Assembly (NCBI GenBank): GCA_035084275.1
Contig: CM068756.1
Coordinates: forward strand, 14,446,001 to 14,510,000
DNA: 64,000 nt
Direction: 5' to 3'
Source: Hydrolagus colliei
Taxonomy: Eukaryota
Shown here: positions 40,601 through 64,000 of the stretch, one piece after another
Layout: each line of letters opens with the position of its first letter
How positions within the stretch are numbered: the stretch's first letter is position 1
Program-made: the position numbers and the translations under genes
Notes under the pieces: model-generated
Databases searched by the model: none
Told to the model about the DNA's origin: nothing
The model's input: only the letters and a program-made list of their open reading frames with translations

Positions 40601-41052
40601 CTGCAAACTCACGTTAAGGAGCTGGAAGAAGCCGCTTCCTTTGCCTTTCACACCAAATGTTTTCCTGCTGTCCGCCTGTGTTTCCAAGTAGCCGTGCTCA
40701 CCCTCTTTTTCCCACTGGAACTGCAGTACTGAACCGCCTTGATAGAAGGGTAACACACAGCTGAAAGAGACATTTGTCCCTCTGACTGCAGCCACACGTT
40801 CGGGGATTTGAATCACTTTGACAAATGAAGCGCAAGGAACTGTCAGAAGTTAAAGTCAAACACAGATATATTAGGTGATGTGCCGTGAAGAAAACCAAAT
40901 GTATAAAAGGGAAAAAAACGCAGGTTTATATGATAAAGGCACATGGACACAAGCTTGCACATGTATCATAGAATATATACGTTATAGCATAAACATATAC
41001 CTGTTGAAATAAAATATAAGGCACATGGATAGAGAAAGACAACACTCCCCAT
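34664..41052 (-). CDS. Inhibitory V-C1-TM-ITIM IgSF receptor B2, 375 aa; exons 41001-41052, 40519-40839, 38751-39071, 36645-36758, 35901-35944, 35576-35686, 34664-34828
   Basis: Same seven-exon phase pattern as B1 (1128 nt). TM LWGGCAAGVFAFLVLLIIIG; tail VAYVTL, TVYAQ, LTYADL, SEYAEV; no stop or frameshift found. Confidence 0.9.
37605..38466 (+). mobile_element. 5'-truncated CR1 LINE in the B2 C1-TM intron
   Basis: ORF 37614-38375 is the CR1 RT C-terminus; (ctatgaat)n tail; empty site visible at about 52787. Confidence 0.95.
38751..39071 (-). CDS. B2 C1-set exon
   Basis: ORF 38728-39015; 321 nt. Confidence 0.92.
39289..39617 (+). mobile_element. tRNA-derived SINE (DeuSINE/SacSINE-like) with L2-type tail
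   Basis: A box tagctcagtggttagagc, B box gttcgaatcc, central gggatgctgctgtatgcaattggctgc, tail aagcgcta..aaatgcaag(att)n. Confidence 0.85.
40519..40839 (-). CDS. B2 V-set exon
   Basis: ORF 40505-40816; 321 nt. Confidence 0.92.
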
Positions 41053-41126
41053 GTCTGACTCTGGCTCTGATCAGATGTAATACATAAACGTGGAGTGTTT
41101 GATATAGAGTACCTACTGTGACACTG

Positions 41127-41169
41127 ACTTCCTGTTTGTTTGGGTTGGTGAAACCTGGCTGGTGTGGTT
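41127..41169 (-). promoter_or_regulatory. B2 proximal promoter ETS+RUNX
   Basis: acttcctgt at 41127-41135, tgtggtt at 41163-41169. Confidence 0.5.
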
Positions 41170-41993
41170 GTTGCAACACGCTTGCAGTAAAAGTATGAAA
41201 ATAATAATTATTCATGGTAATAGAGAAACGTCGATCAAATACATCAACATAAAAACTAGAGTTCTAGAGTTCAGCTTCATTATTGAGTCAGTGGTGCTTT
41301 CTCAAACTGGAAATATTGTTTCATGCATTAATTCCGCTTGGCGTCTATAGTATCCGAACAACAACAACAACTTTGATTTATATAGCGCCCTCAACGCCGG
41401 ACAGCGTCTCAGAGCGCTTTACAAGGCAATCTGGTGGAATATTTCTGATGATAGTTCTCTCTGTCCCCTATTGATAGAAATTAAGCTTTTCCTCTAAAGC
41501 ACACACCGTCCCTCTAAACTACCAAATGATCGTCCCATTTTAACCTTACCCTTCTTATGCAAAATGCTGGCCACTCAACTTTGCTCACATCTGTTTCGCC
41601 ACCGAGTCTTAGAGTTCCAGTTTCTACCAAAACACGAGACAGCACAGTCAAAGTAACGATATTCTCAGTCTTTCTTTCAAGCTCCAATCACAATCTTTGT
41701 GTGTTCCCTCATATCCAAAGCCTTGATCACTCAACTTTGTTCCCACTTTTTATTCCACTCGGTGCCATAACCAGTAACGTTAAGTTTCTGCCCACACCAT
41801 AAAAAGCATAATCACATTACCCAATGATGTACTGCCTCTCTCTGTCTCTCTCTGTCTTTCTCTCTGCAACCACAATGCCTCTGCCGTCTTGTTCTCCTAG
41901 ATGTTGTGCTACTTTCAAAATTGTCCACTGTCGCTCCTTGACGACTTCTCTGTCCTCATCCCTCTGCTTGGCACTGCATGACCAGCTGCAGAG

Positions 41994-42404
41994 TAGAGTC
42001 CGGCGATATATCGATATATCGCTAAAATCTGATATAGTTTTCATATCGATACACCGATATAGGCATTTCAAAAACATCGATGTATCGAAAAATCAATATA
42101 TCGAGGTAAAAAATCGGAATACGCGCACACAGAACTACAAGACCCAGATTGCTGATCTCTATACACAATGCACAGACCGATGTGCAAAGCCGCCATGTTG
42201 TATTCATAGTCCTCGTATTCATAGCACCCAGAATGCGTGCGCACCCGGAACATGCGCTTACCCAAAATGCGAGCGCATTCTGAGTGCACGAGCCGCACGT
42301 GCATGCGCAGTACGAAAAAACCGAAAATATCGATATTTCGGTATATCTCGATATGAGCCCATCGATATATCTAAATCGGAAAATTTCCATATCGATGGAC
42401 CCTA
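41994..42404. mobile_element. hAT-type MITE with 8-bp TSD CTGCAGAG
   Basis: TSD at 41986-41993 and 42405-42412; TIR tagagtcc/ggacccta; internal atcgatat repeats. Confidence 0.85.
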
Positions 42405-43796
42405 CTGCAGAGTATCCAAGAACTGTAGTCTATGCCTTTTCCTCACTGCGTGCTCTCTCCCTTGATGGTACTATCCATAGACAAGTGATTAACTTTCGCA
42501 CTGATGTCAGCGAAAGGTTAATGTACATTTCAACTTCCACTGTTGATTCCAGGTATATTGGTGCTTTATCCATTTGTGTGTGAATGGCTAGATTTCCCCA
42601 GACTTACTCTAACGTAACATGGTAGACAGAAGCCATCCCTCTTGCCTTCTGCAAATATTTCCTTCAGCTTACATACCTTCACTTTCTTGCCAACTAAATA
42701 GAGAGAAACATAATTGCGCAGTATAGGAAGTTTCTATTATTTGAATAACTGGTTGCAGACATTGAATTGTATGATATTATTCAACTTAAACCAAATAATT
42801 GGTACTTTCCTTGGAGATGCTGGAATTCCTCAAATCGATAGATAAGTGAATGAACCTAGCTGCCTCTGCCCTTCCGTCTATTACCCCCTCCCTATGTCTT
42901 CCTCACACCCCAGCTCCTACACATACCTGCCTCCACACCTTTGACCTGTCACCCACTCCTCTCATCCTATAAGTTGTTTAACAAACCACCTACTATCTCA
43001 AACTCATCTCTACCCCTCACCTTACCTTCCAGCTCAACCTTCTTGCTACTTATGGACAATAAAATCCTCTCACTGGCAACGGGTACCATTCCCACCCTGA
43101 TATATATGGTCTTCATCTCACCTATCCTTTAAAGCAGCGGATCTCAACCAGGGGTACATGTACCCCAAGGCGTAAAAAAATACTTCCAGGGAGTACTGGT
43201 GGCAGTACATTGATTTGTTTAACTATCTTATTTAGCATTTTATAGCCCTCCAAATTGTATATTTAATTGTACTGCAAAGTGAACTGATCCATGTCCATCT
43301 ATCAATGCACACTCTACCTTATTAAACTAGTCTAGAATCTTGGCATCATGTTTGACCATGAATTATTCTTTCTAACCCACATCTGTGCAATGTCTTGCTC
43401 TGCTTTCCACAACTTCTACTATATCGCCCATTTGTGCTACTATCTCGTACAGTAGGCAGCCAAACCTCTATTAGATGGATTCATTACACCCAAGCTTGAC
43501 TATGAAAACACCTTACTTGTCGGCCTCCAGAACTTTTATCTCCATAGCTTGCAAAATAACCCATATATCTACTGGCTTTGTCCTTTCCAATGCTAGGCTC
43601 CAAGAACATATCTCCCCTACACTTGCCCAACTCCACTGGCTTCCCATCACACAGAGGATACTAATTCAGGTACTGACCTGCAAAGTCCTTCATGGCCTAG
43701 CACCTACATACCTCAGTGATACCCTATCACCCTATGAACCTGGCAATCCCTCCACTCAATAGGTTCCAGTCTATTTCATGTCCAGCACCTCACCCA

Positions 43797-44715
43797 ACAA
43801 CAACAACAACAAATTACATTTATAGAGCGCCTTTCACGTCGGGAGGACGTCCCAAGGCGCTGCACAGGAGGAGTGTGACCTGAGCTGGGAGTGGAGTGTT
43901 TGGGAAGGGGTGAAACATGAAGTGGAGGTCGAAAACTTCGGGGTGGAACAAAAGGCACAGTCGAAGAGGAAAGTCTTCAAACCGGCCTTGAAAGAGGAAA
44001 GGGAAGAAACGAGATGGAGGGATTGGGGGATGGTATTCCATAGGGTGGGAGCGGAGAAACTGAAGGCCCGGCCTCCGATGGTGGGGTGGTTTGGGCGGGG
44101 GGCTTGGAGCAGGCCAAGTCCTGTTGAACGGAGGGTCCGGGTGGGCTTGTAGGGGGAAAGTAGATTGATTAAATAGGGTGGGGCAAGGCCTTGAAGGTGA
44201 GGACGAGGATCTTGAACTCGATCCTCTGGAGAATGGGGAACCAGTGGAGACGGGCGATGGTGGGGGTTATATGGTCGCGGAGGTGGGTGCGGGATAATAC
44301 ACGGGCTGCAGAGTTGTGGATGACCCGCAGCCTGTGAATGGAGGAACTGGGGAGGCCGAGGAGGAGAGTGTTTCCATAGTCCAGCCTCGAGGTGATGTAC
44401 GCGTGCACGAGTGTTTCGGCAGCGCAGGGGTAAGATAGTTGCGGAGCCTGGCAATGTTGCGCAGGTGGAAAGAAGCGGTCCCGGTCTAGGCATGTATGTG
44501 GGGGAGGAAGTAGAGTTTTTGATCGAACATTTTGCCGAGGTTCCTGATTGGCTTTGTGAGGTGGAGAGTGCAGCCTTGGATGTTGAGGCTGGCAGCGCCC
44601 GATGTGCGGAGGCGCTGGCTTGAGCCGATCAGGAGGGCCTCGGTCTTACTCATGTTCAATTGTAGGAAGTTGTCCCTCATCCAGGACTCAATGTCGGACA
44701 GACATGCTGTCAAAA
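43797..44715 (-). mobile_element. L2 3' fragment
   Basis: HAYITSRLDYGNTLLLG, SWMRDNFLQLNMSKTE; (aac)n tail; absent in copy Y. Confidence 0.88.
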
Positions 44716-45869
44716 CATCAACATCATTGGTGGGTAGCTCTTCAGCCACTCTACCACCACACTGTGAAACTCCATCCCACTGTCCCTCCATCTCAACTCC
44801 ACTTTTGCTTCTATCAAGACCAATCTCAAGAACTCATCTGTGCCTGTATTATTGATCAATCTCCAAAGAATTATCGATTCTTTTCATGGCAGTTTTTCAT
44901 TTCTGTGTATAGTCGTGATGCTTCTTTTTCATATAAGTACAATGCAATGACAAACACAATGTATAGCACTGTACAAATAAAACATTTCTTCACAGATTCC
45001 TGGGAATTGCTTAGAATGAATCTGCCAACATGAAAAAAAACTGTAGTAAACAACAACAACAACTTTGATTTATATAGCACCCTTCACGCCAGAAGGCGTC
45101 TCAGAGCGCTTCACAAAAATGCAAGGACTATGATATTTTCCAATTAGGATACATACCATTTGGTTATCCTTAGATTGTGTGCATTGAAATAATGCTGTTT
45201 AATTAACTGATAACAAATGTATTTTTATATTTGTAATTGCTCAGTGATCATGATGGAATTCGTGGAAACATGTCCCTGTAGATAGTTCTCCAACTTATTA
45301 CAATTGGTTATAAGTTATGGCATTGAGTGGTACTGCAGAATACACTGCACTGTACTTATAACTTGGAAAGCTGTAAACTACACTATTGTTTCGATTGTTT
45401 ATGTGTTGCAGCTTAGTTTTGCTGAGATCAAAAATTGTGTGTGTACCCAATACATCTGCTGCACGATTTGTGGCCATACCTTCAAGCTGCTGCTGAGCCT
45501 CTGAGTCTTGTTGCCTAAATGTCTGTACCACAAAATCGTTTTTTTTAATGTCTTCAAATGATAGATGTATATTTTCCACTTTGGCTGTAAATTCATCTGT
45601 CTCTCTGACTGTGTTTCAAACTCACACAGGTTACTTTATGGCCACATACTGGTTTAATGTAGAATCTTTGGAGATGCCATCCTTCGTATGAGAAGCTAAA
45701 TGAAAGACCACCTTGTCAATTCAAGTAGAAATGGAAGAACCCACGGTACTATTCAACAATAAAAGGGAGTTTCTTCCAGTTTCCTTGGAATCAGTCCCCC
45801 AATTTGGTCATTTGCTTTATGGCTATTTTGGGTATGTTGCTGTGCACTAAAAAGATAGACATTAAACTT

Positions 45870-46387
45870 TAGCCCGTGTACTATCCCGCACCCGCCTCCG
45901 CGACCACATAACCCCCGCCCTCGCCCGTCTCCACTGGCTCCCCATCCTCCAGAGGATCGAGTTTAAGATCCTCATCCTCACCTACAAGGCCTTACACGGC
46001 CTTGCCCCATCCTACTTAACCGATCTACTCTCCCCCTACACGCCCACCCGGACCCTCCGTTCAACAGGACTTGGCCTGCTCCAAGCCCCCCGCCCGAACC
46101 GCTCCACCATCGGAGGCCGGGCCTTCAGTTTCTCCGCTCCCACCCTATAGAATGCAATCCCTCAATCCCTCCGTTTCATCTCTTCCGTTTTCTCTTTCAA
46201 GGCCGGTTTGAAGACTTTCCTCTTCGATCGTGCCTTTTGTTCCACCCCAAACTCTTTTACCTCTCCTTCGTGTTTCACCCCTTCCCAAACACTCCCCTCC
46301 CAGCTCGGGACACACGCCTCCTGTTCAGCGCCTTGGGACGTCCTCCCGACGTGAAAAGCGCTCTATAAATGTAAATTGTTGTTGTTG
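45870..46387 (+). mobile_element. Young L2 3' fragment of the same family as 43797-44715
   Basis: Near-identical reverse complement of 43800-44290; absent at the orthologous point (about 57830) in copy Y. Confidence 0.88.
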
Positions 46388-47256
46388 TATATTCTGTGAA
46401 GTATGTTGAGACAGCCACCCAAATATGAAAGATGTTTGCATTCACATTGATTATGCTGTCAGCACTGAGGTGAGAAGGTGAGATGTACGTAATGGAAGAG
46501 CCTCTGATTTTTAAACATGCGACGGTTGCACTCATCAGGACTTGATATACAAATAGGAACCAAGGACTTGTGAACAAGGTTTGAGGCGGAGACTGAAAAG
46601 TGGATATTATTTGCATACATGTGGAATTTAACCTTGTGTTGCCATTGAATTCACTCAGCATGAGCAGGTTATTATTGTGAAGGAAAAGACCAAGGTTAGA
46701 ACTCCAATGATCTGATTTTACAGACCCAATTACATTTGCAACTGATGTACCTGTGGGATGGACCAAGAGGAAACACAAACACATGGATTGCATGGAACTT
46801 GCCAAGCGGGAAGTTAAAAGGAATCTAGTCATGTTATTTGACAAATCACACAGGTGTAAAAACATAGCTAGGAGCAACAAACAAAACCAGCAGTGTGTTG
46901 TCCTATTTGCTGCACTACATAAGTACATTCAGAGTCCTGTATCTCTGTAGTTAGAGCACTTGCCTTACAATCACGAGTCCTGAGTTCAATTTCAGACAGG
47001 GCAAAACGTTGGGCAAATTTCCTTACTCCACATGCATAATAATAGTTCCTCAAAAAATAATAAATTGGTCATTTTAATCCATGACTGTTTGTGGGACACT
47101 GTTGTCCGCAATCGGCTGTTGCCATTCGCCCAATATATACAACAACAACAACAACAACAAAATTGCATTTCTAGAGTGCCTTTCACGGTGCGTGGACCTG
47201 TATCAGTTCACTTTGCAGTGCAATTTATGAAGCATTTTGAGACATCTGGAACAGTT

Positions 47257-47405
47257 ATAGAATCATAGAATCATAGAATTTTATGGCACAAAAGGAGGCC
47301 ATTCGGCCCATCTAGTCTGTGCCGGCTCTTTGAAAAGAGCGATTCAATCCCACTGCCCTGCCCGCTCCCCATAGCCTAATAGACCCGTTCTCCCTAAATA
47401 AAGAA
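47257..47405 (-). mobile_element. CR1 3'-end fragment
   Basis: (catagaat)n followed by the same 3' UTR as the other CR1 copies; absent in copy Y. Confidence 0.85.
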
Positions 47406-49843
47406 GTTAGTTAAAAGCACTACATCAAATGCAAGTATTATTATTATTATTGTCATTGTTACATTGCTTTGGTGAGACAACATCTTGAGTAATGTATAGC
47501 AATATAGCCACTGTGACATAACGGGGCTTCCCTGTTCCAAAGAGCAATGCAGAGCAAAACAATGAGGATGATTCCCTGCGTTAGAGGAATATGCTTTGAG
47601 AGGTGTTTAATTGTTTATGGGATTGAAAATCTAACCCCAGACCAACAGTTTAGGTCTGAACAAAACAGCAGAATTAGAGGACATAGGCTTTGAGTTGCAA
47701 GGGCAATATCAGGATCGATACCAGGTTTTTCTTTACAGCAAGTAAAATAAAAATACCTGGGATAGGTTGGGAGGAAGGTAAGTTGAGGCCACCTAATGTG
47801 ATACGCAGATTGAAGCTGTGATGGGCAGTTGGTGGGATGGCTGTTCAGAAAGGATGAGTGTCAGACAGGCAAAAGGGCGTTCCAGAATGTATACAACCTA
47901 AAGATGTATTGTATTTTTATGTTTTGCGTTAAACAGACACAAAATACACGCAGCAACAACACCACCTCGTGGAGTATCAGTGCCAACATGAAATATTGCG
48001 CCCACTTTTTACACCCATTTTGCTACAATACATTACTATACATACATTGATGAACAACGTTAATAACCCGTGCTCTATACAGCCGGAGACTTGTGATAGA
48101 TTTATCCTTTGAGATTTACTCATAAGCAGAACGATTGGGGTTTTAACTCTTATTTGTTTCATGTCGGGTATAATATCAGGAGATACACAAAATGCTCAAT
48201 GGCCACGTTTCAACCGTTTCACTGCATGTGACGAATTGCACCACATTTTATTGCCTCCCCCCCTCTGTTGTATTTAACATCCTCTCCTCCCAACATACCC
48301 CAGTTCTGACTAAAGGTCGTGGACAAGGTCAGCAGCAGAAGTGAAGCAAATGTATATTTTGGAGGGTTAGATGTTATGTTCTAGAGGTTCTGTCCAAACG
48401 TCCCCTCCCATTAATGAATCTGATCAGTTTTGACTCCGATAACAAGCTGACCTCCAACAATGCTTCACAAGTGTTTCGCCCCATTAAACATTTCTGTGCC
48501 ACCTGACTTCCTGCCTCAGAGGGTTTATCGAATTGACTGTGTTTTGAGAGTGTAATTCGTAAGTACATATAGTCATTATAGCTGACGTCAAACGTCAGAC
48601 TCAGACACACTACATTGGGATACAGTGGGCAGTGTGGGACTGCAGGGCTGGTGGAAGGCAAACCGTGTCTTCTTTTACTTAACACATTTTTTTATTCTTA
48701 AGTTGGACGTGTTTAATATATTTCCACATGTTCTCGCTATTGCTTTTCCCAAGAGTATTGACCATTAATTATTGACAAAAGATTCCCACAGACCTTGACT
48801 GAACATTTTATTTATTGCAATTCCAAATGATGAATCAAAGCTGTAATGTTCAAATGTAATGTACGGTACAATCAACTTCATTTGAGATTTTACCGTATGG
48901 TATTACAGATATCTCACAACAATAGAAATTATTAATAAAACACTAGAGTGGTGGGGGTGGGTAATGTAATATGTTTAATTGTAGGTTTCTTGGGGCCAAA
49001 CTGACCAAACTGGTGTGTAATGTTTTGACCTGGGTCTGGGAAGAAAGTCTGGGAAACCACCAACAGCAAAATTACGTTGGTTTTGCGCCTTTCATGTAGG
49101 AACCATGTCCCAAGATAACGGGATGTATAACTGCTGATATATAGCGAGTGAAACCAAAACAAGTTGGGTGATATTCAATTATATTGCGACTCCTGTGTGG
49201 TGTAAGTCAAATGCCTCAAATCCGTTTGATACAGTCCTGTAGACTGGTTCATAATTTATAATCTTCCGTTTGTTCCAGTCATTGCTTTTCCTCCAGCATA
49301 ATTCAATCTCCTGGGATCATTTCTTCCTCACTTCACCTGTAACCAAACAAGTGGTGTCAGTGTGAATATCACCAATCCTTTGATTCTATGGTTAAGTGTC
49401 CTGATTGCTGCTTTCTACCCAAAACAACATTGAAGTTTCAATCTGAAATCTTCACAATGAGACTGCAAACGGAATATATTTTAGTTTAATTGCAAACAGG
49501 GACTAAAGATACTCAGACAACATTGATATTGATATCCCGCCGATCACTTGGAGATGGAAGCCGAGCCATCACATATTGACTGTCTGATTTGATTTGTCTC
49601 TTACACGGTATTAATGTATTCTAACACAAAATATTTTCAACTTCTCTTGAAGAATGTCCAGTCTCATGCAAGTAGAGAGTGTGGATGACGACACAAACAT
49701 AAATATACAACATGAAAACAAAATAACAGATACGGAAGTTATTACACAAACATAGAGTTTAATGTTGTTCCAGACACCTGGAGGTTTAGAGGAAATATCT
49801 TTATATCCACTGATTATTAGAGAATCCTCCAATAAACAAATCG

Positions 49844-52800
49844 TCATGTCCACAATCTAAACATTCTGGACCCGATTACCGGTGGTTTCCTGTTCATTGA
49901 TAATTTTATGGGCTACGATATCAATACAATAATTGTGAATGAAACCACAATATTATGTTGAAACACAGAATGCCTCCTTACCTTTCAAGCTGTGAGATTT
50001 TAACATGGTCAACAATGAAGATGGTCAACACTATCACTACCAAGAAACAGAATATAAACCGTAACATCATCATGTTCTCCGACATTCCACCATAATATCC
50101 ATTCCTCCCAGAAGCTAGAAAACAAAAATCGGAATGTAGCATGTTTACTGGATAATCTACGGGATAATGAGGCTGTATTGGGAAAATGCACATTTTCTTA
50201 ATTAATTTCTATTTGAAGCTGCAATGAGGAGGACTAATATAATCAACTGTGAATTTAGGTGATTGAAAACAACTGAGAATTGTGGTGAAACATCAAGGCA
50301 CAGGCAGTTTATTAGTGATGTTATAGAGACACAGTTACACATTATGTAGTAACAGTTCCCCGAGACTATGTGCTGAGGTTCAACTGTTCTAGAGACAAAG
50401 ATTTTTCCGACCCGAGTCATGGATAGTTGGGCACCATCGTAATAAAAACTGGACATCTACCATCACATAGAAAAGGCTATAAAACACCTCATCAACTATT
50501 TTTATTTTAAGTGCAGCAATTATTGCTATAAAGGAGAAAAAGCAGATGATTTGCTCCAACAAGGTGTCAGAAAATTAAATGGATGGTCAGTGAATATAAT
50601 TAATGTTTTATTCGTGAACATGTAAAGTCGAAACGTCCAAATACTGATTTCTCACCTAATTGCAGGTGGAGCGTTCAGGCTATTGCACCTCAGGCAGGTT
50701 ACCAAATAACAAACGTATATTTTGAAAGAGAAATATTTAGAATGTAATACCAAACCCAAAACAATTCTCAGGTTTGAGATTTTCTTCGTTTCAAAGACTC
50801 AATACAGGGCCGTACGCAGGATTTTTTTTTGGGGGGTGCGAATTGCTAGTGATGGGACCAACAATGGCCGGGGGCTTGCGGGCTGCCCCCGAAGCCCCCT
50901 CGAGGTCTCCGACGTTTTACACAGTTCAAGGTCTTATTTAATCGGTTCAGAAGATCTAATATGAACGGTAAATGTTTCATGCCCTTGGTGTTTAAGAGCA
51001 TCATTATTTATTCAGTGTTTATATTTTCCCCGGTAGTCCGTGTCTAATTGGGAAGGTCGAATGTGTTCGTCGATAAAAGCAAACACGATTGTTGACTCGA
51101 TGATGTAAGGAATGCGAACGATAAAGTAAATTACAATCCAATTAACACAGTACAATGACGAATGCTTGATAAATGTATGCGTATAGAGAAAATGATCATA
51201 AACTACAGATTGACGGTACTTAATAAGTTGTTCTGCATTGTTATCCTAAGACTAAATTTCTTTCGGACTGTAATGAACAATAATGTAAGAGTAAAGTATG
51301 AATGATGTGCTCAGATATTCCAGCAAAGCAAATTTTATAAAAGACAAGAAAATATACAGAAACTGAAAATCAGTGTCAAACAGTTAATTCACACGTGTTA
51401 CAAGCCTGTTATCAGCATTATCCTGAAAATATCGTTGAACTGTGAGCAATAGTGTAGTTAGTTTTTATTTATTTATTTAGAATCAAAATTAAAGGCATCA
51501 AGCAATACTGATCTGACGAAAAAATACTTGAAAAAATAAGGGAGGGGAAATTAATTCTTTAATAGCGTTCCGTATTCGAGACGCCTCGGTCGCTTTGAAG
51601 CCAATACGTCAACCGCTCTACCAATATCGATTTTCATATTATAATGAATGTGCATTAACGCGAGGGCTGAAAGTCGCTCTTATACGGAGCAGAATGCTGG
51701 ACACTTAGGCAAACCTCGACCAGGAGATTAGGTGACTCGTGAGGTATATACCAGGCTTCTAAGAGACGCCCTGAACGTTTACTGGCGACAGCATCTGACA
51801 AATAGTGAGCTATATGGTACACTACCACACTGGTATCACAGACATTACCGCAGAGGCGTCTTAGGTTTAGCGGACATAGCTGGAGAAGCCGGGAGGAAAC
51901 TGTCCATAGTGCTACTATCCTATGGGAACCATGGCACGGTCACAGAACACGAGGTAGACCGACCCTAACCTACCTCGCTACATGAAATGCACGGATTATA
52001 TTATTATTCAAAGAGAGAAAGAGTGACTTTCAGAGGAGTCACGTTGAAGAGATTTGTGTAGGAAGAGCTGTTGCTTTGCAGACTCGACTGCACCTGTCCT
52101 TTATATCCCGCTGGTGTGAGGCAGCAGTTCTGGGGACCTCAACTCTAACAGGTGCAGGTTAACAATCCTTTAAGTTATAGCCAATTACGTGACACTGCCC
52201 ACAAACCCTGAAAAGAAATCTCAATTGTCAATCAGTCAGATATGCAACCTCGACCTTGGGAATGTCTTCAGATTCAGAGGCACTGAGTAGGAGGGAAAGA
52301 AAGTTCACACTAACAGTAACTCTGTTCTCCTGTATTACTATCATTTTTATGTTTCCATAAAATGTACAACAGTAGCAGTAAGTACCCTGATATAATGTCC
52401 AGGTTGTTGGTTGCAATTTGCTGCTCGCAAATTGTTCAGCTCATCTACAACAACAACGTAATTAGTTTTGTACAGCGCCTTCACATCAGGAGGTCGTCCA
52501 AAGTTCTGCCTTTCCCATCAATGATGATAATACTCTTTGTATTTGATGCAGCAGCTTGTCATTAATCCGTGACATCTCTTCACAGAATACACTGATTGTG
52601 CGTTTTATCGGCAAAAACGCGGCTACCAATTGCACACGAACACTCATGGATCCAGTGGCAACATTAATATGATTGTTATTGTGAAATATTTTGAAGGCAT
52701 TAATAACCCCGCAAAAGTGATCTGAGAATTCATTTAATGCGCATCCACATGTATAAAGATGTAGAGAAATGAAACCCAACGCTCCCATCTTCCTCCACAA

Positions 52801-55292
52801 ACTGAATCCAACTTCATCCCGATAAGTGTCAAGCTTCAGGTATTTCATGATCTCTGACTTCCTTCACCTGAATAATAATAATCTTTGCATTTTTATATCG
52901 AATTCAATGATTAATGGTATTATTATCTCATGATTGTCATGTTAATCGCTTCAGATGAATCACTCAAATGTAATTTTGTTGTTGGTGTTGTTTACGAATC
53001 AATGCAACTAAACATCCCTATGAGATTTGAATTAACAATAGTTGACTTTTTAAAAGTCACTTAGAATCTTACTTGTGTTAGGTAGTGGGATGGCGTAGCT
53101 TGCAATAGCTGAATTCTTCAGGCTGCTGTGAGACACCAGACAGGTATAAACAGATGCTATCTGGACAGACTGTGTGTCTTCAATAGAGCTAGAGACCTTA
53201 CAGAGTTCCCATGAGTTCTGCTCTTCTATGGTTACTGTCTCTTCCATCTTTATTCCTGATGTTGGTGTAATTTGGTTCTCATCTTTATACCATATGATGG
53301 TGAAATCCTTTGGGTAAAATGCGGTAGTTTCACACACAAGAATCCGATGCTTAGTTGAACTTCCAGATAAAACTCTCAGTGGAGTTGGAGGAACTGTAGA
53401 ATATATAATGGGGGGAAATCGTATTAAATTTCATCAATGAGCAGAACAGACTTTATTTTGATTAATTTCTTTGCAAGATCATGATTCCTGAGTGCAAAAG
53501 AAGGTTCTCTAGATACACAAATATCCCTCTCACAGCAGTAGAAGCATTCCTCTTGCTTCAACTACTTTGTGGTATAACAATTAATGTTGATTCATAATCT
53601 TTGTCTTACATAGTGGAGTTCCTGTAGCTCAGTGGTTAGAGCGCTCGCCTTACAAGCGTGAGACCTGTGTTCGAATCCAGGCAGATCAGGGCAAAACCTT
53701 GGGCATGTTTCCTTACTCCACATGCCTAATAATAATCCCTCCAAAAAAAAAACCAAAATAAAATCGGTCATTTCAATCCATGACTGTTTGTGGGATGCTG
53801 CTGTATGCAATTGGTTGCTGCGTTTCGCTCACAAATATACAGTCAATTCACTTTACAGTATATTGTGTGAAGTCATTTAAGACGTCTAGACGATGTGAAA
53901 AGCGCTAAATCAAATGCAAGGATTATTATTATTATTATTACCAAGTGTAAGAATTAGCAGTTAGAATTCATTTCTGCAAACTCTTGGAACAGAGAAGATA
54001 TAGGATTCTTGACAGATGTGTGCATACTGTGTTCTTCTGGCTCAATTGGCAGCATTCTTCCTTCTGAGTTAGAAGGATACGTGTTCAAACTCCGCGTTGG
54101 GACATGTAATTCACATAGACTATGTTAAAACACCCAATGCAATGCTGTTCTTAGGTTGATAAATTAAACCTGGTTTAGTTCTGCCAGTTATGTTGAACGT
54201 TAAAGATCTCATGTGAATAAATTGGCGGCTGTGTTCGCTTAGAAAGTACTCAGTCTCATGACTTAACAACATATCATGTGCAATGCTTTGGGAGGTGCTG
54301 TATCAAATGAATGGATTGTATGTTTTTAGTCCTGAGAGGATTTGATCAGGTAAAGAGTGAAACACTGAATTTCTAACATGAGTCCGTAAGTTAAAATCTT
54401 TACCACAAACTGTTGGAGGTTGAATTCTGGTTTTACTGAAATTAAACAAAATAGTTTCTGAAGTAGAAGCCATAACACCCTCTCAAAGGAATTTTAAAGT
54501 CACGGTTCCTTTTTATTCTACATGGATCAATTTTATAACTTTTGTAGAATAAGAAATATTTCATCAATTTGTCATGAGTTGTATTACTTCATGTATCACT
54601 TGTACAGATTTTGAAATTAAAATGTTATTTCCACTTAATTTACTCTAATACCTTTATGTGAAATTTATTAATAAACAATGTAAATCACTATATAGAATTC
54701 ACCGTATTATTACTTTCATTGTAATTACCAAATATATTCGCCCTTCATCCACACTCACCCTGCACAGTTAAGCTTGATCCAGGTCCTGTTCCAATTACTG
54801 ATCCCTGAACCATCACTGTGCAGCGATAGACTCCAGAGTCCTGCAAACTCACGTTAAGGAGCTGGAAGAAGCCGCTTCCTTTGCCTTTCACTCCAAATGT
54901 TTTCCTGCTGTCCGCCTGTGTTTCCAAGTAGCCGTCCTCACCCTCTTTTTCCCACTGGAACTGCAGTACTGAACCGCCTTGATAGAAGGGTAACACACAG
55001 CTGAAAGAGACATTTGTCCCTCTGACTGCAGCCACACGTTCGGGGATTTGAATCACTTTGACAAATGAAGCGCAAGGAACTGTCAGAAGTTAAAGTCAAA
55101 CACAGATATATTAGGTGATGTGCCGTGAAGAAAACCAAATGTATAAAAGGGAAAAAAACGCAGGTTTATATGATAAAGGCACATGGACACAAGCTTGCAC
55201 ATGTATCATAGAATATATACGTTATAGCATAAACATATACCTGTTGAAATAAAATATAAGGCACATGGATAGAGAAAGACAACACTCCCCAT
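49844..55292 (-). CDS. Chimeric receptor: B2-type leader-V-C1 (55241-55292, 54759-55079, 53073-53393) spliced to a type-A Arg TM exon (49982-50114) and a short tail (putative 49844-49856), about 276-279 aa
   Basis: The ectodomain exons are near-copies of B2. The only TM exon downstream of C1 is A-type (SGRNGYYGGMSENMMMLRFIFCFLVVIVLTIFIVD). The C1 donor and TM acceptor are both phase 1, so the join is in frame. No B-type TM/ITIM exons occur between 50114 and 53073. Confidence 0.78.
49982..50114 (-). CDS. Type-A transmembrane exon with Arg (A3)
   Basis: ORF 49978-50193 core; acceptor ttttgttttctag, donor AG/GTAAGG; near-identical to 61268-61400. Confidence 0.85.
51740..52000 (+). mobile_element. 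RTE-clade non-LTR retrotransposon C-terminal fragment
   Basis: YTRLLRDALNVYWRQHLTNSELYG, frameshift, then QRRLRFSGHSWRS..ILWEPWHGHRTRGRPTLTY. Confidence 0.6.
53073..53393 (-). CDS. Chimera C1-set exon
   Basis: ORF 53050-53337; 321 nt, phase 1/1. Confidence 0.92.
53613..53940 (+). mobile_element. tRNA-derived SINE, duplicated copy of 39289-39617
   Basis: Same position in copy Y. Confidence 0.85.
54759..55079 (-). CDS. Chimera V-set exon (2 nt different from the B2 V exon)
   Basis: ORF 54745-55056; differs from B2 only by H>D (GEHGY/GEDGY) and one synonymous change. Confidence 0.92.
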
Positions 55293-55367
55293 GTCTGACT
55301 CTGGCTCTGATCAGATGTAATACATAAACGTGGAGTGTTTGATATAGAGTAGGTAGCTGTGACACTG

Positions 55368-55410
55368 ACTTCCTGTTTGTTTGGGTTGGTGAAACCTGGC
55401 TGGTGTGGTT
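55368..55410 (-). promoter_or_regulatory. Chimera proximal promoter ETS+RUNX (copy of the B2 promoter)
   Basis: acttcctgt at 55368-55376, tgtggtt at 55404-55410. Confidence 0.5.
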
Positions 55411-55545
55411 GTTGCAACACGCTTGCAGTAAAATTATGAAAATAATAATTATTCATGGTAATAGAGAAACGTCAATCAAATATATCAACATAAACATTTC
55501 TCTGCCGTCATCCCTCTCCTTGGCACTGCATGACCAGCTGCAGAG

Positions 55546-55945
55546 TAGGGTCCGGTGATATGTCGATATATCGCTTAAACCTGATATAGTTTTCATATCG
55601 ATACGCCAATATAGGTATTTTGAAAAATATCGATATATCAAAAAATCGATATATCGAGGTAAAAAATCGGAATGCACGCACACTGCACTACCAGACCCAG
55701 AATGCTCATCTCTATACAGAATGCACAGACCGAGGTGCAAAGACGCCATATTGTATTCATAGTCATCGTATTCATAGCACCCAGAATGCGTGCGCACCCG
55801 GAACATGCGCTCACCCCGAATGCGCGCGCGAGCCGCACACACATGCACAGTACAAAACCCCCCAAAAATATAGATATTTTGGTATATCTCGATATGAGCC
55901 CATCGATATATCTAAATCGGAAAATTTCCATATCGACGGACCCTA
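55546..55945. mobile_element. hAT-type MITE, duplicated copy
   Basis: TSD CTGCAGAG at 55538-55545 and 55946-55953; TIR tagggtccg/cggacccta. Confidence 0.87.
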
Positions 55946-58900
55946 CTGCAGAGTATCCAAGAACTGTAGTCTGTGCCTTTTCCTCACTGGGTGCTCTCTC
56001 CCTTGATAGTACTATCCATAGACACGTGATTAACTTTCGCACTGATGTCAGCGAAAGGTTAATGTACTTTTCAACTTCCACTGTTGATTCCAGGTATATT
56101 GGTGCTTTATCCGTTTGTGCGTGAATGGCTAGATTTCCCCAGACTTACTCTAACGTAACATGGTAGACAGAAACCATCCCTCTTGCCTTCTGGAAATATT
56201 TCCTTCAGCTTACATACCTTCACTTTCTTGCCAACTAAATAGAGAGAAGCATAATTGCACGGTATAGGAAGTTTCTGTTATTTGAATAACTGGTTGCAGA
56301 CATTGAATTGTATGATATTATTCAGCTTAAACAAAATAATTGGTACTTTCCTTGGAGATGCTGGAATTGCTCAAATCGATAGATAAGTGAATGAACCTAG
56401 CTGCCCCTGCCCTTCCGTCTATTACCCCCTCCCTATGTCTTCCTCATACCCCAGCTCCTACACATACCTGCCTCCACACCTTTGACCTGTCACCCACTCC
56501 TCTCATCCTATAAGTTGTTTAACAAACCACCTACTATCTCAAATTCATCTCTACCCCTCACCTTACCTTCCAGCTCAACCTTCTTGCTACTTATGGACAA
56601 TAAAATTCTCTCACTGTCAACGGGTACCATTCCCACCCTGATATATATGGTCTTCATCTCACCTATCCTTTAAAGCAGCGGATCTCAACCAGGGGTACAT
56701 ATACCCCAAGGCGTAAAAAAAATACTTCCAGGGAGTACAAGTGGCAGTACATTGATTTGTTTAACTATCTTATTTAGCATTTGATAGCCCTCCAAATTGT
56801 ATATTTAATTGTACTGCAAATTGAACTGATCCATGTCCATCTATCAATGCACTCTCTACCTTATTAAACTAGTCTAGAATCTTGGCATCATGTTTGACCA
56901 TGAATTATTCTTTCTAACCCACATCTGTGCAATGTCTTGCTCTGCTTTCCACAACTTCTACTATATCGCCCATTTGTGCTACTATCTTGTACAGTAGGCA
57001 GCCAAAACTCTATTATATGGATTCATTACAACCAAGCTTGACTACGAAAACACCTTACTTGTCGGCCTCCCGAACTTTTGTCTCCAAAGCTTGCAAAATA
57101 ACCCATATATCTACTGGCTTTGTCATTTCCAATGCTAGGCTCCATGAACATATCTCCCCCACCACTTGCCCAAATGTATTTTTGTATTTGTAATTGCTCA
57201 GTGATAATGATGGAATTCGTGAAAATATTTCCCTGTAGATAGTTCTCCAACTTATTACAATTGGTCATAAGCTATGGCATTGAGTGGTACTGCAAAATAC
57301 ACTGTACTGTACTTATAACTTGGAAAGCTGTTAGCTATACTTTTGTTTCGATTGTTTAAGTGTTGCAGCTTAGTTTTGCTGAGATCAAAAATTGTTTGTG
57401 TACCCAATACCTCTGCTGCACGATTTGTGGCCATACCTTCAAGCTGCTGCTGAGCCTCTGACTCTTGTTGCCTAAAATGTCTGTACCACAAAATCGTTTT
57501 TTTTAATGTCTTCAAATGATAGGTGTATATTTTCCACTTTGGCTGTCAATTCATCTGGCTCTCTGACTGTGTTTCAAACTCACACAGGTTACTTAATGGC
57601 CACATAATGGTTTAATGTAGAATCTTTAGAGATGCCATCCTTCACATGAGAAGCTAAATGAAAGGCCACCCTGTCAATTCAAGTAGCAATTGAAGATCCC
57701 ACTGTACTATTCAACAACAAAAGAAAGTATCTTCCAGTTTTCTTGGAATCAGTCCCCCAATTTGATCATTTCCTTTATGGATATTTGGGGGATATTGCTG
57801 TGCACTGAAAACACAGTCAATAAACTTTAGAGTTTATTCTGTGAAGTATGTTGAGACAGCCTCCCAAATATGAAAGAAGTTTGCATTCACATTGATTATG
57901 CTGTCAGCACTGAGGTGAGAAGGTAAGATTTACTTAATGGATGAGCCTCTGATTTTTAAACATGCGACGGTTGCACTCATCAGGACTTGATATACAAATA
58001 GGAAACAAGGACTTGGAAACAAGGTTTGAGGCGGAGACTGATAAGTGGATATTATTTGCATACATGTGGAATTTAACCTTGTGTTGCCATTGAATTCACT
58101 CAGCATGAGCAGGTTATTATTGTGAAGGAAAAGACCAAGGTTAGAACTCCAATGATCTGATTTTACAGACCCAATTACATTTGCAATTGATGAACCTGTG
58201 GGATGGACCAAGAGGAAACACAAACACATGGATTGCATCGAACTTGCCAAGGTGGAAGTTAAAAGGAATCTAGTCATGTTATTTGACAAATCACACATGG
58301 TGTAAAAACATTGCTAGGAGCAATAAACAAGACCAGCAGGGTGTTGTCATATTTACTGCCATACAAAAGTACATTCAGAGACCTGCAGCTCTGTGGTTAG
58401 AGTACTTGCCTTAGAAAGACGAGTCCTGAGTTCAATTTGAGACAGGTCAAAACGTTGGGCAAATTTCCTTACTCCACATGCCTAATAATAGTTCCTCAAA
58501 AAATAATAAATCGGTCATTTTAATCCATGACTGTTTGTGAGACACTGTTGTGTGCAATTGGCTGTTGCCATTCGTCTAATATATATAACAACAACGACAA
58601 AATTGCATTTCTAGAGTGCCTTTCACGGTGGGTGGACCTGTATCAGTTCACTTTGCAGTACAATTGATGAAGCACTTTTAGACAACTGGAACATTTAGAA
58701 GACGTGAAAAGCACTCTATCAAATGCAAGTATTATTATTATTATTTACATTATTACACTGCTCTGGTGGGACAACATCTTGAGTAATGTATAGCAATATA
58801 GCCTCTGTGACATAACGGGGCTTCCCTGTTCCAAATGGGCAATGCAGAGGAAAACAATGAGGATGATTCCCTGCGTTAGAGGAATATGCTTGGAGAGGTG

Positions 58901-61267
58901 TTTAATTGTTTATGGGATTGAAAATCTAACCCCAGATCAACAGTTTAGGTCTGAACAAAACAGCAGAATTAGAGGACATAGGTTTTGAGTTGCAAGGGCA
59001 ATATCAGGATCGATACCCGGTTTTTCTTTACAGCAAGTAAAATAAAAATACCTGGGATAGGTTGGGAGGAAGGTAAGTTGAGACCACCTAATGTGATACA
59101 CAGATTGAGGCTGTGATGGGCAGTTGGTGGGATGGATGTTCAGAAAGGATGAGTGTCAGACAGGCAAAAGGGCGTTCCAGAATGTATACAAACTAAAGAT
59201 GTATTTTATTTTTATGTTTTGCGTTAAACAGACACAAAATACACGCAGCTACAACACCACCTCGTGGAGTATCAGTGCCAACATGAAATATTGCGCCCAC
59301 TTTTTACACCCATTTTGCTACAATACATTACTATACATTGATGAACAACGTTAATAACCCGTGCTCTATACAGCCGGAGACTCTTGTGATAAATTTATCC
59401 TTTGAGATTTACCCATAAGCAGAACGATTGGGGTTTTAACTCTTATTTGTTTCATGTCGGGTATAATATCAGTGGATACACAAAATGCTCAATGGCCACG
59501 TTTCACCCGTTTCACTGCATGTGACGAATTGCACCACATTTTATTGCCTCCCCCCCTCTGTTGATATTTAACATCCTCTCCTCCCAACATACCCCAGTTC
59601 TGACTAAAGGTCGTGGACAAGGTCAGCAGCAGAAGTGAAGCAAATGTATATTTTGGAGGGTTAGATGTTATGTTCTAGACGTTCTGTACAAACGTCCGAT
59701 TCCATTAATAAATCTGATCTGTTTTCACCCTGATAACAAGCTGACCTCCAACAATGCCTCACAAGTGTTTCGCCCCATTAAACATTTCTGTGCCATCTGA
59801 CTTCCTGCCTCAGAGGGTTTATCGAATTGACTTTGTTTTGAGAGTGTAATTCGTAAGTACATATAGTCATTATAGCTGACGTGAAACGTCAGACTCAGAC
59901 ACACTACATTGGGATACAGTGGGCAGTGTGGGACTGCAGGGCTGGTGGAAGGCAAACCGTGTCTTCTTTTACTTAACACATTTTTTTATTCTTAAGTTGG
60001 ACGTGTTTAATATATTTCCACATGTTCTCGCTATTGCTTTTCCCAAGAGCATTGACCATTAATTATTGACAAAGGTTTCCCACAGACCTTGACTGAACAT
60101 TTTATTTATTGCAATTCCAAATGATGAATCAAAGCTGTTATGTTCAAATGTAATGTACGGTACAATCAACTTCATTTGAGATTTTACCGTATGGTATTAC
60201 AGATATCTCACAACAATAGAAATTATTAATAAAACATTAGAGTGGTGGGGGTGGATAATGTAATTGTAGGTTTCTTGCGGCCAAACTGACCAAACTGGTG
60301 TGTAATGTTTTGACCTGGGTCTGGGAAGAAAGTCTGGGAAACCACCAACAGCAAAATTACGTTGGTTTTGCGCCTTTCATGTAGGACCCATGTCCCAAGA
60401 TAACGGGATGTATAACTGCTGATATATAGCGAGTGAAACCAAAACAAGTTGGGTGATATTTCAGTTATATTGCGACTCCTGTGTGGTGTAAGTCAAATGC
60501 CTCAAATCCGTTTGATACAGTCCTGTAGACTGGTTCATAATTTATAATCTTCCTTTTGTTCCAGCCATTGCTTTTCCTCCAGCATAATTCAATCTCCTGG
60601 GATCATTTCTTCCCCACTTCACCTGTAACCAAACAAGCGGTACCAGTGTGAATATCACCAATCCTTTGATTCTATGGTTAAGTGTCCTGATTGCTACTTT
60701 CGACCCAAAACAACATTGAAGTTTCAATCTGAAATGTTCACAACGAGACTGCAAACGGAATATATTTTAGTTTAATTGCAAACAGCGACTAAAGATACCC
60801 AGACAACATTGACATTGATATCCCGCCGATCACTTGGAGATGGAAGCCGAGCCATCACATATTGACTGTCTGATTTGATTTGTCTCTAACACGGTATTAA
60901 TGTATTCTAACACAAAATATTTTCAACTTATCTTGAAGAATGTCCAGTCTCATGTAAGTAGAGCGTGTGGATGACGACACAGACATTAATATACAATATG
61001 AAAACTAATTAACAGATACGGAAGTTATTACACAAACATATTGTTTAATGTTGTTCCAGACGCCTGGAAGTTTGGAGCAGATATCTTTATATCCACTGAT
61101 TATTAGAGAATCCTCCAATAAACAAATCGTCATGTCCACAATCTAAACAGTCTGGACCCGATTACCGGCGGTTTCCTGTTCATTGATAATTTTATGGGCT
61201 ACGATATCAATACAATAATTGTCAATGAAACCACAATATTAGTTTGAAACACAGAATGCCTCCTTAC

Positions 61268-61979
61268 CTTTCAAGCTGTGAGATTTTAACATGGTCAACA
61301 ATGAAGATGGTCAACACTATCACTACCAAGAAACAGAATATAAACCGTAAAATCATCATGTTCTCCGACATTCCACCATAATATCCATTCCTCCCAGAAG
61401 CTAGAAAACAAAAATCGGAATGTGACATGTTTACGGGAGAATCAACGGAATAATTGGGCTGCAGACTTTCTCAATTAATTTCTATTGGACCCATGAGACA
61501 GATATTCAGAGACTTGTGTTTGACAGTTCGCGAATCGAAAGAACTGAGCTTTCGATTCGATTCGCTCAGTTCTAATTGAGCAGAGTTCTAAGTATTTAAA
61601 TGTTATAAAAGACAATTGAACAGAGCGAGAGGGTAATTATGACAGGTTGGCATCCTACCATCCAATCCTGAGTTGGGTTTAGAAACCGTGTAACTGGCAA
61701 CCACTGGATTCCGAAGGGTGACATGAGATGCCAGACAGGTATAAACAACCTCTCTCTCTAAAGGCTGAGTCTCTTCTATAGAGCTGGAAATGTTGAAAAG
61801 TCCATTTGTATTCATTTCTTTCTTTGAATTGATCCCCGTTTTAACTTCATTGCCATCTTTCAGCCACGTGAGCGTTAAATCCCCCGGGAAAAAGTCAGTC
61901 ATTTCACACACAAGAGTCAGAGACTTTGAGGAATTTCCTTCAGGATCTCTGGGGAATATCTTCAGTGGAGTCGGGGGCA
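61268..61979 (-). CDS. Type-A receptor A4, 3' part: C1 exon 61659-61979 and Arg-TM exon 61268-61400; leader and V expected beyond the window
   Basis: C1 VPPTPLKIFP..TLVCEMTDFFPGDLTLTWLKDG..VYTCLASHVTL; TM ..MMILRFIFCFLVVIVLTIFIVD; both open and in phase. Confidence 0.82.
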
Positions 61980-62276
61980 CTGGAGGACAGAGAATAGAGC
62001 AGAATCATGTGATTTGTGATCCGTTGGAATATATAACTTTATGCTCATTTGAATTGTACAATAGCTGTTTCCTTCTTCACGAGCAGCGAAGAAATTGGAA
62101 TGAAAGCTCAGCCACCATTCTAGAGCAACAACAGGCCACATTATACACCGCCCTCATTCAGGATAGTGACCTTAATGCAGATTTAAATAGAGATTTTGCC
62201 ACACATAGAGAAAGACGCAACAAATTCCCATTCACATCAAAACTAATTTTCTTCCACTCTATTAATCTACATTTTG

Positions 62277-64000
62277 GAAAAATTGGCAGGTAAGACAACT
62301 AACGAGCAGTGGGCAGCGTTCAAAGAGGAGATAGTTCAAATACGGGAGGGGTAATAAGGAGGACAGGGGTAAAGGGAAGACGGGAGAAAAATGCAGAGGA
62401 AGTAATTTGTGCCTTAGAGTGCATGTATGTAAATGCACGAAGTTTGAGAAATAAAATTGGTGAGCTGCAGGCTCAGGTTGCTGCGAGGCGATATGATGTT
62501 ATAGCAGTAACAGAGACTTGGCTCCAGCATGGGCAGGAATGGGAGTTGAACATTCCTGGTTATAATGTATTCAGGAGGGATAGAGAAGGGAGAAAAGGGG
62601 GCGGGGTGGCAATTTTAGTTAAGGACTCAGTGACTGCCTTAGAAAGGAACGAGGTGGAAGAAGGACTAAAAACCGAATCTATCTGGTTAGAATTGAGGAA
62701 TAAAAAAGGTGCAGTTACACTGTTAGGGGTATACTATAGACCACCAAATAGTGGGGAGGAGATAGACAAGCAGATCTGCAAGCGTATCACGGAGAAATGC
62801 AGAGCTAATAGAGTAGTGATAATGGGTGACTTCAACTATCCCAACATAGACTGGCAGAATAGTAGAGTAAAGGGCAAGGAGGGAGAAGAATTCCTGAAGT
62901 GTGTGCAGGACAACTTTCTTGATCAGTATGTTTCCAGTCCAACGAGGAAAGAAGCATTGCTGGATCTAGTTTTGGGAAATGAGGTAGGGCAAGTTCAACA
63001 GGTTTCTGTAGGTGAGCATCTAGGGAATAGTGACCACAATATCGTTAGATTCAGAATAATTATGGAAAGGGATAAGGAACGATCACAGGTGAGGACACTC
63101 AACTGGAAAAGGGCTAATTTCAATGAGTTGAGGTGGGACCTAGCCAAGGTGGATTGGAAAGAAAAATTGGCAGGTAAGACAACTAACGAGCAGTGGGCAG
63201 CGTTCAAAGAGGAGATAGTTCAGGCACAGGTCAAAAGCATCCCCACAAAGGTGAAATGTAAGGCATCCAAACCTCCCTGGATGACTAAGGAAATCGGGGC
63301 CAAAATCAAACAAAAAAAAGAGGCTTATGATAAGTGTCAGGCTCAAAATTCAGAAGGGAACCAAGCAGAATATAGGAAGTGTAGGATAGAACTAAAAAAG
63401 GAAGTTAGAGGGGCAAAGAGACTGCATGAAAAACAATTAGCGAGTAAGATTAAGGGGAACCCTAAGGTTTTTTACCAACATATTAAGAGTAAAAGGTTGG
63501 TCAAGGAGAGGGTGGGGCCAATTAGGGACCTAGGAGGAAATCTCATTGTGGAGGCAGAGGGCATGGCTGATGTACTGAATGAGTACTTCGCCTCTGTCTT
63601 CACAAAAGAAAATGATACAGCCAATGCCATGGTATTAGAGGAGAGGGTAGGAGAAATGGATAGAATAATTATAACCAGAGAGGAAGTGCTAAAAAGGTTG
63701 ACGTCGCTCAAGGTGGATAAGTCACCTGGTCCGGATGGGATGCACCCTAGGTTACTAAGTGAGGCACGGGAGCAAATAGCAGGGACTCTGGCCACGATCT
63801 TTCAATCTTCCTTGGACACAGGGGTCGTGCCAGAGGACTGGAGGATAGCTAATGTTACTCCCTTGTATAAAAAGGGGCAGAAGGACAAGCCTGGTAACTA
63901 CAGACCAGTCAGTCTAACGTCGGTAGTGGGCAAACTTCTAGAGTCCATAATCAGGGACAAGGTAGATCTTCACTTAGAAAGATATAGGCTAATAAAGGAC
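62277..64000 (+). mobile_element. Young CR1 LINE; ORF2 (APE endonuclease into RT) open from ATG 62423 to the window end
   Basis: MYVNARSLRNK..DVIAVTETWL..GGGVAILVK..GVYYRPP..MGDFNYP..LDLVL..SDHN..KSPGPDGMHPR..DWRIANVTPLYKKG..PGNYRPVSLTS; no stop found in 526 codons. It lies in the A4 V-C1 intron, antisense to the gene. Confidence 0.95.

Follow-up and report, generated by a model that had tools for sequence, protein, structure and literature searches.

The 64,000-nucleotide (nt) stretch of the Hydrolagus colliei genome analysed here (assembly GCA_035084275.1, contig CM068756.1, positions 14,446,001 to 14,510,000; hereafter the window, with coordinates counted from its first letter) carries a cluster of what are, to judge from their sequence, non-rearranging immune receptor genes of the form VJ-C1-transmembrane (TM), in which A- and B-types alternate. 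The A-type has an Arg in its TM segment and a very short tail, the B-type an uncharged TM segment and a tail with immunoreceptor tyrosine-based inhibitory motifs (ITIMs), and the ectodomains of the two share only 42-49% protein identity. All receptor exons lie on the minus strand, and tblastn searches with exon peptides resolved six gene units, which from high to low coordinates are A1, a hybrid, B2, A2, B1 and A3. The hybrid, in which leader, V and C1 exons like those of B2 are followed by a type A TM exon, is the subject of this report; an earlier note, made from the letters of the window, had proposed that it encodes an activating twin of the inhibitory receptor B2.

The resemblance of the hybrid to B2, which lies 14 kb away, was as close as that note had claimed. 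The leader exon (55292-55241, MGSVVFLYPCALYFIST) is identical to that of B2 (41052-41001; 0/52 nt differences), the V exon (55079-54759) differs from its B2 counterpart (40839-40519) at 2/321 nt, and the C1-set exon (53393-53073) differs from that of B2 (39071-38751) at 9/321 nt, all of them within the final 88 nt and altering 4 residues, so that identity runs from 100% in the leader through 99.4% in V to 97.2% in C1. One of the two V differences is synonymous and the other sets an Asp (GAC) in the hybrid against a His (CAC) in B2; the earlier note had counted both differences and the single Asp/His replacement correctly, and had read the replacement as His to Asp in the copy; since B1 carries Asp at this position, a change from Asp to His in B2 is the more likely event.

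Downstream of the hybrid C1 exon, tblastn with exon peptides found no B-type TM, middle or ITIM exon between 53073 and 41300, and within the window such peptides matched only 36758-34664 (B2) and 10092-6901 (B1). The next TM exon, at 50114-49982, is of type A, as had been said of it: it encodes ..SGRNGYYGGMSENMMMLRFIFCFLVVIVLTIFIVDHVKISQLE(R), its most hydrophobic 19-mer (MLRFIFCFLVVIVLTIFIV) has the Arg at the third position and is followed by DHVKISQLE, and it differs at 1 nt from the A1 copy (61408-61276). It is flanked by a canonical ttttctag acceptor (tttgttttctag) and a donor (AG/gtaagg), and is separated from C1 by an intron of 2958 bp. The C1 exon is left, and the TM exon entered, in phase 1, one frame is kept through exons of 52, 321, 321 and 133 nt, the spliced open reading frame (ORF) is open, and 4/4 exons and 8/8 splice sites are intact. 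The in-frame C1-TM joint to which the earlier note had drawn attention was therefore borne out, and it was to be expected and is not independent evidence, because every Ig and TM exon of the family is phase 1.

The predicted product is 276 residues long if the ORF reads through the last donor (..SQLER, then TAA) and 281 residues long with a candidate terminal mini-exon at 49759-49777 on the minus strand (..R CLEQH stop), the acceptor of which is conserved in 4/4 A-type copies. Its tail would be DHVKISQLER with or without CLEQH, short as claimed and lacking a tyrosine motif. Pfam models placed a V-set domain at residues 30-123 and a C1-set domain at 138-216; an NCBIfam scan, whose models are prokaryotic only, gave no match, and neither did a protein search with the C1 end and type A TM part (residues 205-276). 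The TM exons of the hybrid (50097-50114) and of A1 (61391-61408) both start with 18 extra in-frame nt (about SGRNGY), which are absent from A2, A3 and both type A TM exons of Callorhinchus milii.

Upstream of the hybrid ATG, a putative promoter at 55293-55494 on the minus strand is common to B2 (41053-41253) and B1 in a three-way alignment and contains an ETS-like motif (AACAGGAAGT) that is conserved also in B1. Contiguity with the B2 flank extends over only these 202 bp, a portion that has been conserved even with B1, the older paralogue. The claim that the promoter of B2 came along with its ectodomain thus held for the proximal flank and failed for the stretch beyond it, to which we return when the reading is weighed.

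The origin of this arrangement could be read from a self-comparison of the window, in which six collinear blocks join 52787-61489 to 38465-50216 at 92-98% identity and are broken only by transposon-sized insertions and deletions. By these alignments, a segment was duplicated in tandem and has stayed collinear, and the hybrid stands where its two copies meet. One copy (52733-61489, minus strand) holds the type A TM exon of A1, the intergenic region, and the B-type promoter, leader, V and C1 with 340 bp of the following intron; the other (37552-50216, minus strand) is collinear with it at 92-98% and has private transposon insertions, including a long interspersed nuclear element (LINE) at 37605-38464 in the B2 intron. 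The duplicated block began in the C1-TM intron of an A gene and ended in that of B2; with its copies in tandem, the hybrid is left at the join, with A1 upstream and B2 downstream.

Both kinds of intron sequence are still recognisable within the hybrid. Its B-type part (52733-53072, minus strand) corresponds to B2 38750-38465 together with 37604-37552, and in B1 its counterpart extends down to 10934; past the LINE insertion in B2 the homology continues for 53 bp (52735-52787 against 37552-37604, 96%), and the B-side breakpoint is sharp at 52731-52735, where the homology to B1 (10934) likewise ends. Its A-type part (50115-50800, minus strand), in which homology begins at 50800, has homologues in the C1-TM introns of A3 and A2, in a relic at 26552-27189 and among the A-type introns of C. 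milii. Between the two lies a filler of ~1.9 kb (50801-52732) with an A-rich run near 50830 and, at ~51730-51985 on the plus strand, a frameshifted C-terminal fragment of LINE ORF2; no homologue of the filler was found in the window or in four loci of C. milii and H. perlo. The A-side breakpoint is only bracketed, to 50800-52731, because the filler is unmatched and the older A copies are unalignable upstream of the equivalent of 50800. A search of the hybrid intron for a relic of a B-type TM or ITIM exon or of an A-type C1 exon found none.

The sequence fixes the duplication join and not the path to it, as far as these alignments go, and the same end state could have been reached had a whole A-B pair been duplicated and then suffered a deletion reaching from the intron of the B gene into that of the A gene. 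The C1-TM intron of A1 is only 260 bp long, and part of it (61489-61642) is unrelated to the intron common to the hybrid, A2, A3 and C. milii; on this comparison it is A1, the true twin, rather than the hybrid, that has been rearranged there and no longer has the common part. The private 860-bp insertion of B2 (37605-38464) encodes the C-terminal part of a LINE reverse transcriptase, and at 14204-15033 there is a copy in the opposite orientation with 94.5% identity to it. Lying 53 bp away from the breakpoint of the duplication, the insertion has no counterpart in the hybrid copy; shorter copies lie at 47263-47404, 25383-25616 and 5382-5553, and the LINE element has been active recently.

Superimposed on the duplication is a tract of exceptional similarity to B2 (54414-55413, minus strand), with 5 mismatches in 1000 bp, introns included. 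At 99.5% identity the tract takes in the proximal promoter, the leader with the intron behind it, V, and the first intron-2 sequence over 350 bp, while outside it the hybrid and B2 copies differ at about 4-7 positions per 100; against a background of about 4.5% mismatch, a binomial test gave P=2e-14. Since the introns are as similar as the exons, the tract reflects gene conversion and not purifying selection, and its identity, set against about 95-96% elsewhere, indicates that the conversion came after the duplication. C1 likewise matches B2 without a difference over its first 233 nt (P=2e-5 at 4.5%), which represents either a second short conversion tract or constraint. Between the TM exons of the hybrid and A1 there is a difference at 1/133 positions, as compared with 3.7% in the flanks (P=0.04).

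The donor of the ectodomain, B2, is a complete gene of seven exons (34664-41052, minus strand) with a predicted product of 375 residues. Its leader, V and C1 exons are followed by exons for an uncharged TM segment (36758-36645), a middle portion (35944-35901) and two cytoplasmic portions (35686-35576 and 34828-34664), and its model contains three ITIMs (VAYVTL, LTYADL and SEYAEV), so that B2 is inhibitory by motif; once spliced, the tail has TVYAQT around its second Tyr, a sequence that departs from the canonical ITIM. The B2 tail is 74-75% identical to C. milii proteins named by NCBI as 'tyrosine-protein phosphatase non-receptor type substrate 1-like', and is collinear over four tyrosines with the tail of human SIRP-alpha (37% identity, E=3e-8), an alignment best taken as a lead. 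The B-type tails (B2 34664-36758; B1 6901-10092) and the human tail have LTYADLD and SEYA.V in common.

The ectodomain of the family likewise points to SIRP. Among solved structures the closest match to the V-C1 portion was SIRP-alpha (2wng, E=5e-11), and the V domain has the SIRP-type J-like strand G-x-G-x-x-L-x-V (GTGPGSSLTV) and is followed by a C1-set domain. The three-domain V-C1-C1 form of SIRP is not found, since every copy here, like the shark relatives, has just one C1 exon separating V from TM, and from these features the family looks like an undescribed SIRP-like group with one C1 domain. Its closest database relatives are C. milii proteins at <=63% identity, and its exons have ~80% DNA identity to a C. 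milii locus, which supports the cartilaginous-fish origin that the earlier note had thought probable. The Arg-TM module, of the form R...(I/V)(I/V)DH, was found in RefSeq models of Scyliorhinus, Heterodontus, two Chiloscyllium species and Heptranchias, and its recurrence in five shark species implies that V-C1-Arg-TM is an old and widespread architecture of the family. In Heptranchias a B-type pseudogene is followed by an A-type gene, so the two types are neighbours there too, and the pairing of tail with ectodomain is not rigid, as the C. milii protein P0005 combines an A-like ectodomain with an ITIM tail. UrIg, an MHC-linked (major histocompatibility complex) non-rearranging VJ-C1 gene, was considered as the family and rejected, since UrIg2 has one VJ and nine C domains and is not V-C1-TM. 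A description of this VJ-C1 family, met here in a holocephalan, was not found in the searchable literature, and a search of the literature for a shark SIRP or paired-receptor family, or for its adaptors, returned nothing specific.

A similar arrangement exists in C. milii (MU249845.1, 15.22-15.29 Mb), where two loci, L003 (1-12266) and L004 (19-12263), are 99.06% identical over a block comprising a type A TM exon, an intergenic region, and a B-type leader, V and C1 with ~800 bp of intron. The L004 copy (19-15543) runs on into B-type TM and ITIM exons (protein P0010), whereas the L003 copy (1-15607 with what comes after it) is followed by half a B-type TM exon, a disrupted A-type C1 and then an intact type A TM exon (15497-15607) in the right phase. 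B-type ectodomain exons therefore stand upstream of a type A TM exon in two holocephalans, and the two events look independent because the copies of each species are closest to each other. Judged from these loci, the recurrence shows the event to be biologically plausible and recurrent, the function of the product in either species being a separate matter. It is tempting to go further and suppose that a SIRP-like VJ-C1 system of cartilaginous fish has repeatedly given birth to activating twins, independently in both species and on each occasion through duplication of one kind of block (type A TM exon through B-type C1), with conversion keeping their V domains matched, a generalisation that we offer tentatively and think may well prove too broad.

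For the H. colliei gene itself, the best explanation overall, and one in which we have moderate confidence, is that a hybrid created at the duplication join is transcribed, spliced from C1 to the type A TM exon, and acts as the activating counterpart of inhibitory B2. A tandem duplication copied the block extending from the C1-TM intron of an A gene to that of B2, so that a copy of the type A TM exon now lies 2958 bp downstream of a copied set of B2 proximal promoter, leader, V and C1, and later conversion homogenised ~1 kb (proximal promoter, leader and V) with B2. Transcription would start from the retained B2-type promoter, and splicing of C1 to the TM exon over the 2958-bp intron would give a protein of 276-281 residues that has the ligand-binding face of B2, an Arg in its TM helix and no tyrosine motif. 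By analogy with other receptors that have an Arg or Lys in the TM segment, it would pair with an adaptor bearing an ITAM (immunoreceptor tyrosine-based activation motif) and activate where B2 inhibits. Three features by which paired receptors are recognised are seen here, namely near-identical linked ectodomains, ITIMs on B2, and a charged TM segment with a short, motif-free tail on the hybrid. That the hybrid binds the ligand of B2 is plausible, given a single residue of difference in V and the location of all four C1 replacements at the membrane-proximal end. The suggestion in the earlier note that such a twin counters pathogen decoys of the inhibitory receptor is an analogy.

Known systems offer close parallels. 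In receptors coupled to FcR-gamma the TM Arg is near the outer end of the helix, and the position of the Arg in the hybrid would fit this class of adaptor. In SIRP-alpha and SIRP-beta1, as here, a V domain with a J-like strand is followed by C1-set sequence, the four tyrosines of the inhibitory tail would correspond in order and spacing on the alignment given above, and the activating partner combines a basic TM residue with a short tail; the differences are one C1 domain here against two, and an Arg near the outer helix end here against a Lys. The KIR, LILR and teleost NITR clusters are alike in their alternating activating and inhibitory tandem genes, pseudogene fragments, phase-1 exon shuffling and lineage-specific expansions, all familiar from birth-and-death evolution, while KIR and LILR differ in having C2/I-set domains.

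The nearest precedent in topology is the one that the earlier note had named, FCGR2C (FcgRIIc), and the comparison fits: FCGR2C arose by a segmental duplication bounded by FCGR2A and FCGR2B, with its first six exons FCGR2B-like and its last two FCGR2A-like (PMC6786274). In both cases a tandem duplication bounded by an inhibitory and an activating gene has a hybrid at its join, the inhibitory gene having supplied the 5' exons for the ectodomain and the activating gene those at the 3' end. The FCGR repeat is 82 kb at >98% identity, in a region that varies in copy number, as against 9-12 kb at 92-98% here, and both parental genes have been kept for FCGR2C, whereas here B2 is complete and A1 is visible only as C1 and TM. 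A further difference is that the exons donated by FCGR2A are cytoplasmic and ITAM-bearing, whereas the hybrid received an Arg-TM exon whose tail is 10-15 residues long, and signalling would need a separate adaptor. Siglec-11 and Siglec-16, as described in PMC5701461, are inhibitory and activating neighbours whose N-terminal ligand-binding regions are near-identical by gene conversion. Siglec-5/14 and Siglec-11/16 resemble the present pair in having a converted N-terminal region with the rest diverged, the hybrid tract being 99.5% identical as against about 95% elsewhere. The Siglecs belong to another Ig family and have other ligands (sialic acids), and their expression and DAP12 pairing have been shown, whereas the hybrid is a predicted gene.

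The main rival to an expressed twin is that the duplication is real and the hybrid a by-product without productive expression, an orphan set of exons on its way to decay; we regard this as possible, and as rather unlikely on present evidence, and a number of observations count in its favour or against our preferred explanation. Birth-and-death turnover is evident in the cluster, where non-functional products are common, given that A3 has a stop in its C1 and lacks a V and that the intron relic stands at 26552-27189. Beginning 202 bp upstream of the hybrid ATG, 691 bp of the B2 flank are missing, after which homology resumes, and two blocks of the missing stretch are also found in B1. The hybrid has a long intron of which ~1.9 kb is foreign, transposon-derived in part and including the LINE fragment described above. 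At the 3' end, the AATAAA of A2 and A3 reads AATACA in the hybrid, a change that A1 has as well. The searched protein collections contained no protein of this species, and an identical protein was not found in them. In C. milii the NCBI model P0011 (489 residues, with no TM segment) skips the type A TM exon and joins the next gene.

The intact ORF is itself weak evidence, because conversion has recently reset most of the ectodomain, and conversion by B2 can hold an ORF open without selection; only ~220 coding nt lie outside the recently homogenised tracts. At the membrane-proximal end of C1 there are 4 replacements in 30 codons, for which a rough ratio of nonsynonymous to synonymous change (dN/dS) is near 0.4, a value that with 9 changes is indistinguishable from neutral. 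The precedent of FCGR2C, mostly a null gene and a pseudogene in most people, advises similar caution. Set against a silent by-product are the integrity of all four exons and eight splice sites, the conservation of the TM exon beyond that of its flanks, and the retention, even with B1, of the proximal 202 bp of the promoter.

It is improbable that the duplicated exons serve instead in a secreted V-C1 protein, or in an inhibitory V-C1-V-C1 isoform that skips the type A TM exon into the V exon of B2. All Ig exons of the family are phase 1, so the hybrid C1 would also join the V of B2 in frame, the C. milii model P0011 has a similar shape (leader, V and C1 of the first copy with the V, C1 and tail of the next gene), and read-through past the C1 donor meets a stop within 8 codons (..PNT SKILSDF stop). 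Against this, the type A TM exon is 3 kb off, with a strong acceptor and polyadenylation-type signals behind it, whereas the V exon of B2 is 12 kb off, and P0011, being without a TM segment, looks like a mis-joined model. An assembly artefact, in which two haplotypes or collapsed paralogues were wrongly joined in tandem, is a known hazard of recently duplicated immune gene clusters and is here very improbable indeed, as the window has no gap and the copies differ by 3.5-7% and by transposon insertions and deletions private to one or the other. The join itself is marked by one breakpoint, sharply defined and within unique sequence, the presence of the two copies side by side in a single genome is implied by the conversion tract, and C. 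milii has a similar arrangement.

The mechanism by which the hybrid arose is a textbook one, and the novelty lies in the lineage and the family concerned and in how fresh the event is. Should the hybrid be expressed, as we favour, it would be a newly formed activating partner to an ITIM receptor, with an age of about 4-5% neutral divergence, and a rare early snapshot of a process that is usually reconstructed long afterwards, with its parents, breakpoint and conversion tract still readable. It would also give comparative immunologists a defined pair in which to ask whether a ligand is common to the twins and which adaptor reads the conserved R...(I/V)(I/V)DH module. Without expression, it would be no more than what birth-and-death turnover ordinarily leaves behind in a cluster of immune genes. 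If recurrent births are true, an arms race of the kind known from the paired receptors of mammals would already have operated in the earliest-branching living jawed vertebrates.

The remaining members of the cluster are in varied states of repair, all on the minus strand. A1, the A-type parent, is visible between 61276 and 61980 as C1 (61980-61669) and the TM exon already given; tblastn found neither its V nor its leader up to the end of the window at 64000, and the stretch from 62000 to 64000, in which its V exon would be expected and is absent, is strongly skewed in composition (GC skew +0.27, AT skew +0.23). A2 comprises V (25264-24977), C1 (23812-23501) and TM (22034-21942) exons. B1 is complete, with a leader at 13299, V at 13077-12769, C1 at 11628-11314, TM at 10092-9967 and tail exons to 6901. 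Directly downstream of it lies A3 (613-1895), which is decaying: its C1 (1895-1599) contains an in-frame stop and no V was found upstream by tblastn, and its TM exon (726-613) is intact and retains the TM Arg (RYISCF..). The A-type C1-TM intron relic at 26552-27189, between the 3' end of B2 and A2, is homologous to 842-1426 and 50228-50797, and no adjoining Ig or TM exon was detected.

The window contains zero N, and its GC content is fairly even at about 35-49%. ARAGORN reported zero tRNA genes in it, although tRNA-derived repeats resembling short interspersed nuclear elements (SINEs) are visible. These SINE-like repeats are ~220 bp long, include a tRNA-like stretch (..ggattcgaacacaggtctcacgc..gagctacagg..) and occur in many copies, among them 53620-53841, 39296-39519, 46935-47141 and 58382-58587, and they are present in the V-C1 introns of both the hybrid and B2.

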